The position numbers were made by a program, and so were the translations under genes. From Perna viridis (taxonomy: Eukaryota): DNA of 64,000 nucleotides. The stretch lies in assembly GCA_037379345.1 (NCBI GenBank), contig CM074514.1, forward strand, positions 33,852,001 to 33,916,000, in the 5' to 3' direction. The notes under the pieces are model-generated. The model was not told where the DNA came from, ran no database searches, and was given only the letters and a program-made list of their open reading frames with translations. This document shows, one piece after another, positions 20,210 through 21,357 of this stretch. Each line of letters starts with the position of its first letter. The stretch's first letter is position 1.

Positions 20210-21262
20210 CTAGACAACAGAAAAAGACATTGCATTATGGTGCATGTCAATGTTAGGTCTATGATGTACCATCGCTGTGGTAACTGTCTGTTTATGTTGG
20301 AGTGACTGTAGACCCAGTGCTGGGGTCTGTTTGTGTGGATGTTGTGGTGATTGTAATTCTCCAAACGTTGATGGAAATTCTCCCAAGGTGGGATTTGTTG
20401 ACATGTAGGATTTTGATATGCTAGTCAGTAGTGGTGTCATTTGAATTGGTCCGTACTGATTTTGAGATTGATAAGAAACAGGAACCATGGAGTCACTAAA
20501 CTGCCGTGACGGCGGTAAGTGATGCATGGGCATGTTAATAGTGTCCTTAGTTATTGTAGAAATTGGCAGAAAATTTAAGTCTGTCTCTATCTCGTTTATG
20601 TCTAACTCCTTTTGATTGTGTTTAAGTCGTGGATGAGATGCTTTCTTCTTTTGAATTGGATATGAATGTCGACTAGATTGCACACGCTTCATTGGGTCAC
20701 TGTCTTTCAATGATGAATGTGCACATATGTGTTCTTTTTCACTGCATATAGGTTTGAATACTGGAGTATCTTTTTCATTTCCTGTGCTATTTTGAGCACT
20801 ATGGCAATACTGTCCAGATCGAGAACTTCGAAATCCTGAATCTTCTGAATCAGTCGAAGCTTGAGAAATTGGTCTATCACTTTCAAACTTGTACTGAGTC
20901 TCGCTTAAATCAGACATTCCACTATCATGGAATGTATTGTACATTGCTTTTGATTCATTTGAAGGTAAATCAGGACTGGCATCGAAGGCTTCATTGTGTT
21001 CTGCGTAATCCCCAGAATGAATTGAACTGTTTGCTCTCCAGTATTTCTCTGTTTCTATTAATTTGGCACTATTATAATCATCAGATTTGTTTTTCTTCTT
21101 TGCAAATCTTTTATGAGGGTCATGTTTCTTTGTCATCATTTCTTTGCGAATTTTGTGCTTTCGTAAACAGAATAAAAATATCACAAAAAGGACTAATGTT
21201 ATTACGGCAGGAATGATAATTCCAAGATAGAATAGAAATCGTAACGTCATGCTGCTTGTCAT
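20210..21262 (-). CDS. Uncharacterised 350-aa single-pass (type III-like) membrane protein; single coding exon nested antisense in the UTP6 intron
   Basis: By far the longest ORF in the window and richer in GC and CpG than its flanks. ccaaccATG start context with an in-frame TGA 13 codons upstream. One hydrophobic helix (FLFYLGIIIPAVITLVLFVIFLFC) is followed by a basic cluster (LRKHKIRK), a Ser/Pro/His/Gln-rich tail and a terminal FSVV. Confidence 0.88.
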   Translation of the reverse strand: MTSSMTLRFLFYLGIIIPAVITLVLFVIFLFCLRKHKIRKEMMTKKHDPHKRFAKKKNKSDDYNSAKLIETEKYWRANSSIHSGDYAEHNEAFDASPDLPSNESKAMYNTFHDSGMSDLSETQYKFESDRPISQASTDSEDSGFRSSRSGQYCHSAQNSTGNEKDTPVFKPICSEKEHICAHSSLKDSDPMKRVQSSRHSYPIQKKKASHPRLKHNQKELDINEIETDLNFLPISTITKDTINMPMHHLPPSRQFSDSMVPVSYQSQNQYGPIQMTPLLTSISKSYMSTNPTLGEFPSTFGELQSPQHPHKQTPALGLQSLQHKQTVTTAMVHHRPNIDMHHNAMSFSVV

Positions 21263-21306
21263 GGTTGGAGCATCACGGGAAAAATGTCTGACTGAATGTC
21301 ATCCAT
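21259..21306 (-). promoter_or_regulatory. uORF MDDIQSDIFPVMLQP* whose TGA overlaps the main ATG (ATGA)
   Basis: Read directly: agaATGgat gac att cag tca gac att ttt ccc gtg atg ctc caa ccA TGA. Strong context (A at -3, G at +4). Confidence 0.6.
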
Positions 21307-21357
21307 TCTTAAGTTAATACTAAATCTGTCCACTAACACATCGTGTTTGGCTTAAGT

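Follow-up and report, generated by a model that had tools for sequence, protein, structure and literature searches.

The stretch of DNA analysed here (the window) comprises 64,000 nucleotides (nt) of the Perna viridis genome (assembly GCA_037379345.1, contig CM074514.1, here C4, positions 33852001-33916000), and it raises a question in three parts: is the long open reading frame (ORF) on its minus strand a genuine gene, does that gene lie inside UTP6, a gene of ribosome assembly, on the opposite strand, and if so, how old is this arrangement and what might the encoded protein do? Bare coordinates count from the first letter of the window, and those prefixed with C4 use the numbering of the contig, within the window and outside it. 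A preliminary description had proposed that an orphan membrane-protein gene is nested antisense in a giant intron of UTP6. We find that the ORF belongs to a real protein-coding gene, present in single copy, spliced and expressed, whose 5′ exons are non-coding and alternative and whose coding sequence occupies one exon; it lies inside the span of UTP6 and is transcribed against it. In what follows, UTP6 is the host and the nested gene the guest. The guest consists of the following parts.

20210..21262, minus strand: coding sequence, 350 codons plus TAG stop (ORF, substitution ratios, single copy).
19410..21357, minus strand: last exon, which holds the coding sequence between a 5′ leader of 95 nt and a 3′ untranslated region of about 800 nt (contigs of four runs; 3′ end estimated).
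21358..21359, minus strand: splice acceptor AG, preceded by a long tract of pyrimidines (contig breakpoints; position kept in other molluscs).
28351..28414, minus strand: 64-nt internal 5′ exon, non-coding, spliced to 21357 in the contigs of two runs.
25569..25813, minus strand: alternative 5′ exon, joined to 21357 in one run; upper limit estimated from the 241 extra letters of the contig.

With its ATG start and the whole protein in one exon, this ORF is the longest of the window (the runner-up encodes 144 amino acids), in DNA with 31% G+C (range 29-35%), a composition at which long open frames are rare. The 350 codons on the minus strand are thus as first described. Between the acceptor and the ATG, 36 nt 5′ of the latter, stands an in-frame TGA (21301-21299), so the coding part begins at the ATG of the ORF. 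Only one AATAAA (19435-19430) lies 3′ of the stop codon, and from it we infer that the transcript ends near 19410. A genome search found the guest in single copy in its own genome of 723 Mb. The ratio of nonsynonymous to synonymous substitution rates (dN/dS, by the Nei-Gojobori method) is 0.05 (dS 0.99) in comparison with a relative that is 87% identical, and 0.11 (dS 1.14) in comparison with Mytilus galloprovincialis; both are far below 1, the threshold named in the preliminary description, and the guest protein is under strong purifying selection. An exact look-up of the 350-residue product among recorded proteins returned no record, and a 309-residue record (P0001) is found on unspliced contigs collinear with the genome, which are uninformative on splicing. 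Rfam and tRNA scans of the window gave no matches.

Splicing is seen in contigs of four runs from four separate studies, which we placed on positions 17500-23400 of the window. One contig in each of the four runs matches the genome from 19575 (19443 in one run) to 21359 or 21361, and all four break from the genome exactly at the acceptor AG (21359-21358), so that the ORF does have an acceptor of its own, as had been claimed for about position 21357. Three of the four carry 241-366 extra letters. Beyond the acceptor, two contigs continue at 28353-28382 and a third at 25573-25602, and the GT-AG orientation at these joints places the transcript on the minus strand. The 64-nt exon is bounded by an acceptor ag at 28416-28415 and a donor gt at 28350-28349 (cataacag/GTGCC...ATCAAAG/gtatgc, with slashes at the exon borders), and contains stops in all three frames. 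The alternative 5′ exon ends in ...TTTTCTCAG/gtatgt, with its donor gt at 25568-25567, and shows 79% identity to Mytilus over its 5′ part. The transcript has at least one more 5′ exon, about 300 nt long, upstream of 28414. A transcript contig (L028) of the 87%-identical relative starts exactly at the same acceptor, and in all mollusc loci that we read the acceptor stands 60-95 nt 5′ of the ATG. Contig depth, which is flagged as a poor measure, is 45-78 over the coding exon as compared with 3-9 in flanking contigs, and it fades below about 19270, downstream of the guest. A short repeat of about 170 bp at 17480-17650, with inverted termini and resembling a miniature inverted-repeat transposable element, yielded some 2,000 first-look candidates in the genome search (scored copies are 93-95% identical), and this repeat accounts for a summed contig depth of 23,000-58,000 at its position.

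The 5′ intron is collinear over its whole length with the Mytilus galloprovincialis locus, in eight blocks.

30166-29531, 28032-27667, 27284-26903 and 25873-25737: blocks conserved with Mytilus galloprovincialis, 66-79% identity.
25571-25357, 24943-24820, 23703-23432 and 22791-22458: further such blocks, 66-79% identity.

Since the blocks retain this identity even though synonymous sites are saturated between the two species (dS above 1), they are candidate regulatory elements or unrecognised exons.

The second part of the question concerns the host. In the entire genome U3_assoc_6, the domain at the N-terminus of UTP6, has one significant match only, on the plus strand at C4:33811806-892, 40.2 kb before the start of the window; it scores 36.9 bits (Pfam cut-off 24.7), has the borders tttag/AAAAATT...TATACAG/gtaagt and reads ...KILKKRKNYEYKLRRRTKCKEDYLQYIQ. 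The other end of UTP6 is marked by two plus-strand matches to UTP6_C, one inside the window and one 20 kb past its end (C4:33936183-278, model positions 231-261). The host exons within the window are these.

53005..53084, plus strand: 80-nt UTP6 exon that opens mid-codon (start phase 2) and has good splice sites at its borders, ttacag/GCC...GAGAAG/gtacaa.
58890..59075, plus strand: 186-nt UTP6 exon that scores 28.2 bits (cut-off 27) for positions 70-122 of the UTP6_C model.

U3_assoc_6 and UTP6_C are therefore found on one strand and in the expected order, at the sole such locus in the genome, and UTP6 spans at least 124.5 kb around the guest. Host exons flank the guest (19410 to beyond 28414) on both sides and on the opposite strand, U3_assoc_6 before it and UTP6_C after it. 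The preliminary description had noticed that the plus-strand exon at 53005 opens mid-codon, which its start phase bears out, and had concluded that further exons must lie upstream, where the U3_assoc_6 exon was indeed located. The case that it had named as fatal to the nesting, with all 5′ exons of UTP6 between 21.4 and 53 kb, is excluded, since the sole U3_assoc_6 exon precedes the window by 40 kb. The 53005 exon itself had no match in a Pfam search, and its sole match among 177,635 PDB sequences was to residues 323-346 of human UTP6 (WKxYxTxCLE), a weak one with an expectation value (E) of 1.3, although the protein hit is the one expected.

Between verified or semi-verified host exons, the interval around the guest is at most 93 kb. 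The middle exons of UTP6 (about residues 60-320) are represented by candidates chosen on splice sites and phase only: three plus-strand pieces with textbook splice sites, at C4:33825846-924, 33828339-418 and 33831385-450. Phase is compatible from the second piece through the third to the 53005 exon, and incompatible from the first piece to the second; searches of PDB, Pfam and an atlas of language-model features returned no match for any of the three. If the third piece directly precedes the 53005 exon, the host intron would be C4:33831451-33905004, or about 73.6 kb, an unverified estimate.

Two sets of repeats lie in or near this part of the host. A 30-nt minisatellite occupies C4:33832477-33833199 (L010; 19.5 to 18.8 kb before the window start) on the plus strand inside the UTP6 span, and its frame is open for about 240 codons, with 'DILRGLSRFM' repeated. 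Within the window, the ORFs at 42954-43301 (minus strand), 62018-62302 (minus strand) and 59497-59685 (plus strand) have a common peptide, ...FCYFVCI..L..LCLSVFH.WSL..ILLISARILVPLITL..., beside a common 'KSNQGNQDSSRNQKN...' frame, and are probably copies of one interspersed repeat.

As regards the age of the guest, the preliminary description was mistaken in calling the gene an orphan: it has clear homologues in four mollusc classes. A word search with the guest protein found 51 relatives, the homologues having E values of 1e-149 to 1e-25, and a profile search over 1.84 billion representatives gave 70 matches, 26 of them at E <= 1e-30. Similarity extends over the full length (E 5e-149 for Mytilus, 2e-54 for Mizuhopecten and 2e-26 for Haliotis). 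By these sequence comparisons the family spans bivalves (Mytilus, Mizuhopecten, Pinctada, Mactra, Mercenaria, Mya, Dreissena and Sinanodonta), gastropods (Haliotis, Lottia, Patella, Gigantopelta, Nucella, Babylonia, Lymnaea, Aplysia, Physella and Candidula), a cephalopod (Argonauta) and a chiton (Liolophura); no named member with the full set of motifs was found outside Mollusca among the word- and profile-search matches. Homologues such as LOC110457516 (Mizuhopecten yessoensis), LOC124118947 (Haliotis rufescens), LOTGIDRAFT_166535 (Lottia gigantea), LOC135482325 (Liolophura sinensis) and a 'hypothetical predicted protein' of Mytilus galloprovincialis have in common with the guest the membrane anchor, KKHDPH, DSG, DSGFxSS, TxAxVH and a terminal S-V-V, and likewise consist of a single coding exon with an acceptor just 5′ of the ATG. 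The guest protein itself has the anchor columns with K-x-x-D-P-H, the S-x-D-S-G-F-x-S-S core and the C-terminal S-x-V that define the family. Mytilid copies have lost a proline-rich stretch after the helix that is present in most other members, and the heterodont bivalve and heterobranch snail homologues have long insertions, reaching up to 811 amino acids.

The family is uncharacterised, in that its named mollusc members carry no described function. Three of them (P0018, P0033 and P0057) bear the automatic names 'GATA zinc finger domain-containing protein 3-like / 16-like' and 'myb-like protein I', which are misleading because they derive from low-complexity runs rich in asparagine or glutamine, in proteins without any such domain. 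A 41-residue fragment of a snail member (P0113, in the cluster of P0069) is filed at NCBI under a 'Trebonia sp.' metagenome-assembled genome, and is probably animal contamination of that bin.

Whether the nesting is as old as the family was judged in other species from the annotated genes at loci of about 21 kb around the homologue. In Haliotis rufescens, Mercenaria mercenaria and Liolophura sinensis, a gene on the opposite strand extends across the whole locus, and its product contains U3_assoc_6 and UTP6_C (591 amino acids in Haliotis and 587 in Mercenaria) or UTP6_C (418 amino acids in the chiton). The same nesting in relatives, which had been proposed as a check, is thus present in three of them. 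Mizuhopecten also has a spanning gene on the opposite strand, with a 156-residue product that has no recorded family. Within 10 kb on either side of the homologue, no UTP6 exons were found in Mytilus, Lottia, Mizuhopecten, Haliotis or Mercenaria. The deepest split among living molluscs, in or before the Cambrian, separates chitons from the shell-bearing classes. The nesting in an abalone, a hard clam and a chiton, together with that in the present genome, therefore appears to date the pair to the common ancestor of living molluscs, and the simplest reading is one ancestral host-guest nesting that predates the split of bivalves, gastropods and chitons. We found no literature that combines UTP6 with nested genes or microsynteny, or that treats this protein family.

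A second conserved feature of the guest locus is an upstream open reading frame (uORF) in the leader of the coding exon.

21259..21306, minus strand: 15-codon uORF, MDDIQSDIFPVMLQP; its stop TGA and the main ATG overlap in ATGA.

A short overlapping uORF occurs in seven of the eight mollusc loci read, corresponding to six of seven independent lineages (the others being loci L005, L014, L015, L016, L006 and L029, where it is in the same place). These uORFs have 6-16 codons, are out of frame with the main ORF, start 17-44 nt upstream of it and stop 4-11 nt after the first base of the main ATG, with stop and start overlapping as ATGA in four loci. When the 50 upstream bases were shuffled, such a uORF arose by chance in 15-32% of trials per uORF-bearing locus, so the joint chance of the recurrence is roughly 1e-4 to 1e-3. 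Because the uORF peptide is conserved within mytilids only, it is the position and not the sequence that is kept, which points to control of initiation.

As to the protein, conservation was assessed in alignments of 20 and 25 sequences, the latter spanning four mollusc classes, and three elements stand out.

21164..21238, minus strand: membrane anchor, residues 9-33, FLFYLGIIIPAVITLVLFVIFLFCL (alignments, AlphaFold helix).
20810..20875, minus strand: tail core, residues 130-151, RPISQASTDSEDSGFRSSRSGQ (alignments).
20213..20221, minus strand: terminal S-V-V (residues 348-350), in which conservation of S348 and V350 is 90% or more.

AlphaFold, run with the family alignment, models one helix (residues 4-44, with a predicted local distance difference test score of 84-98) and scores the remainder below 50. 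The protein would accordingly be built from one N-terminal membrane helix and a disordered tail in which short conserved motifs alternate with variable linkers. The original view of an intact gene that encodes a membrane protein in a single exon is thus supported. Within the anchor the listed conserved positions are L10, F11, G14, P18, T22, L25, F26, F29 and C32, of which G14, P18, T22, F26, F29 and C32 are invariant or at least 90% conserved; G14, P18 and T22 stand one turn apart, and such a conserved helix face suggests a specific contact within the membrane. The anchor is followed by a basic stretch and then by KKHDPH (residues 45-50), where R39 and K45-x-x-D48-P49-H50 are conserved. As the 25-residue hydrophobic run precedes a dense basic cluster, the positive-inside rule predicts a very short N-terminus outside and a cytosolic tail.

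The conserved islands of the tail include Y108, D113-S114-G115-x-S117, R130-P131-x-S133, P167-x-x-K170 and T328-x-A330-x-V332-H333. In its core, S139, D141, S142, G143, F144, S146 and S147 are invariant in the 25 sequences of four classes, and within D-S-G-F-x-S only x varies (R, K, T, Q or P at position 145). The beta-TrCP phosphodegron has the form D-pS-G-hydrophobic-x-pS, a pattern that D-S-G-F-x-S fits; likewise, the terminal S-V-V fits the pattern of a class I PDZ ligand, S/T-x-hydrophobic at a free C-terminus. A degron would not require so long a core block, and another or an additional binding partner is thus possible. A Pfam search with the guest protein gave only sub-threshold, helix-driven matches (FAM176, EVC2_like and DUF6249). 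Membership in FAM176 (EVA1A/B) was considered and rejected, the match over residues 9-65 reaching 16.4 bits where the cut-off is 31.5. The nearest neighbours of the guest protein in the atlas are A36R, UL135, LIME1 and opalin, all N-terminally anchored adaptors with disordered tails; the recognition score of 1657 is below the 2300 of known families and at a level that some shuffled proteins reach by chance, and we take these neighbours as look-alikes in layout, by analogy and not by homology.

Taken as a whole, these results are probably best explained by a real nested gene of a mollusc family that encodes an anchored adaptor. A tentative proposal, the likeliest mechanism among those considered, is a membrane-docked adaptor controlled by phosphorylation. 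The helix face formed by G14-P18-T22, F26, F29 and C32 would dock the protein to a membrane partner or microdomain, and the tail would serve as the phosphorylation-controlled adaptor. D-S-G-F-x-S-S, in its acidic and serine-rich stretch, could act as a phosphodegron that recruits SCF-beta-TrCP, which would control the stability of the protein itself or of a partner. The terminal S-V-V might tie the protein to a PDZ scaffold, and the uORF over the start codon might keep translation low or regulated.

Several points weigh against this account. The runs are transcriptome-like in their contig totals (65-105 million letters), and their status as RNA is the guess of a tool; the case for expression rests on splice joints and on the contig depth mentioned above. 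The borders of the host intron are estimates, and the placement of the guest in a single intron is putative. Nesting is shown in four lineages and not in all: the annotated loci of Mytilus, Lottia and Argonauta list no spanning gene, which may reflect incomplete annotation, given that none of these loci contains a UTP6 exon within 10 kb. The argonaut locus, one of the eight read, is without the uORF. The degron and PDZ readings are matches to short patterns, which are easily over-read, and no named relative backs the function; the 22-residue core is conserved well past the need of a six-residue degron and may bind something else, and the topology is a predicted one.

A different role, which we consider unlikely, is that of an auxiliary subunit whose helix contacts a channel, transporter or receptor inside the membrane, with tail motifs that serve trafficking only and a family that reaches annelids and flatworms. 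The helix (G14, P18, T22, F26, F29 and C32) is unusually conserved for a mere anchor, and about 35 weaker profile matches have the anchor and juxtamembrane stretch only, in the pattern F-x-F-G-V-x-x-P-T-x-x-T-x-x-x-F-x-x-F-L-x-C-W-F-K. They come from Owenia fusiformis (an annelid), Macrostomum lignano (a flatworm) and many other assemblies, with profile E values of 1e-8 to 1e-3; profile-profile comparison with hhalign gives a probability of 99% over 41 columns only, a kind of score that membrane helices inflate. However, the similarity ends after the juxtamembrane stretch, the tails differ and carry motifs of their own, a search with the Owenia protein found only itself, and the Macrostomum gene is not in UTP6 at its locus. 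Kinship with annelids and flatworms through the anchor is thus a lead only. Moreover, a subunit of this kind overlaps with the anchored adaptor that we prefer and does not exclude it.

A bolder extension, and a rather unlikely one, would combine these elements: host and guest would form an obligatory unit about half a billion years old, in which the collinear blocks of the 5′ intron, as the regulatory landscape of the guest, are locked in the host intron; the guest would be a mollusc-specific adaptor like Vpu of human immunodeficiency virus type 1 (HIV-1) that brings SCF-beta-TrCP to a membrane partner; and the anchor would define a spiralian superfamily of single-pass auxiliary proteins that includes those of annelids and flatworms.

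It is quite improbable that the protein is a tyrosine-based signalling adaptor of the transmembrane adaptor protein (TRAP) type, such as LAT, PAG, LIME and NTAL, in which case it would be palmitoylated near the membrane and carry phosphotyrosines read by SH2 domains. The layout agrees (a very short outside part, one helix, a long disordered tail), the helix has a conserved Cys32 at its cytosolic end, the atlas look-alikes include LIME1 (0.86), and most family members, the mytilid ones excepted, have a proline-rich PPxPPx[KR]/F after the helix. Nevertheless, there is one conserved cysteine only and no CxxC pair; Y108 alone among the tyrosines is conserved at 90%, Y152 being present in a majority only, and no YxN or YxxL/I/V is repeated. 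The invariant positions are instead serines, aspartates and a glycine, and the low recognition score in the atlas also argues against such an assignment.

Still less credible, and very improbable in our view, is a cleaved signal peptide followed by a secreted serine- and acid-rich product, for instance a phosphorylated shell-matrix or mucus protein. The hydrophobic stretch does lie at the extreme N-terminus, and molluscs secrete many disordered phosphoproteins rich in serine and aspartate. Yet a hydrophobic run of 25 residues is too long for the core of a signal peptide, it is followed by the basic cluster and not by a small-x-small cleavage site, the modelled helix is continuous to residue 44, and the N-terminal sequence is highly conserved across classes, as signal peptides are not; in addition, the C-terminal S-x-V and DSGxxS make sense in the cytosol only. 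Finally, although the transcript has at least two upstream exons, the idea that the ORF is merely the last coding exon of a longer protein, so that the 350-residue product is incomplete, is scarcely tenable given the in-frame TGA in the same exon, the stops in all frames of the 64-nt upstream exon, and the shared start of homologues from four classes, all of which begin with the methionine that stands a few residues ahead of the helix.

The kind of thing described here, an intronic antisense nested gene that encodes an anchored, disordered adaptor-like protein, is ordinary; less ordinary are the phylum-wide family and the conserved arrangement of host and guest. Nested genes are common, and most are young and lineage-specific. 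A pair common to bivalves, gastropods and a chiton would rank among the older nested pairs, and would be a clean case in which to ask why such arrangements persist. The protein family is phylum-wide, strongly constrained and wholly uncharacterised, and its short invariant motifs lead to testable ideas: phospho-dependent recruitment of a ubiquitin ligase, PDZ scaffolding and control of the start codon by a uORF. Annotation also gains, since the 'GATA zinc finger...-like' and 'myb-like protein I' names are corrected and a gene structure of non-coding alternative 5′ exons and one coding exon is added.

Several known systems can be compared with the guest and its protein. In its overall layout the protein is like LAT, PAG, LIME1 and NTAL, and like A36R of poxviruses and UL135 of human cytomegalovirus; unlike LAT, PAG, LIME1 and NTAL, it is without a CxxC palmitoylation pair or an array of tyrosine motifs. 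The membrane proteins with a beta-TrCP phosphodegron include HIV-1 Vpu (DSGNES), IFNAR1 and the prolactin receptor. As in these, D-S-G-hydrophobic-x-S stands in an acidic, serine-rich context that is cytosolic (by prediction in the guest), and as in Vpu, the anchor is N-terminal with almost no outside part; in contrast to them, the guest matches the pattern without homology, and its conserved block is much longer than the degron. For the arrangement of the genes, the closest parallel is that of EVI2A, EVI2B and OMG, which lie antisense in an intron of NF1. The comparison with EVI2A and EVI2B, drawn already in the preliminary description, is fair as an analogy of layout only: in both cases a small membrane gene with one coding exon lies on the opposite strand of a large housekeeping-type host, with its own 5′ exons within the span. 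The two systems have no sequence relationship; in the UTP6 pair the guest is placed within the span of its host, and the pair is traced over four mollusc lineages, including a chiton.

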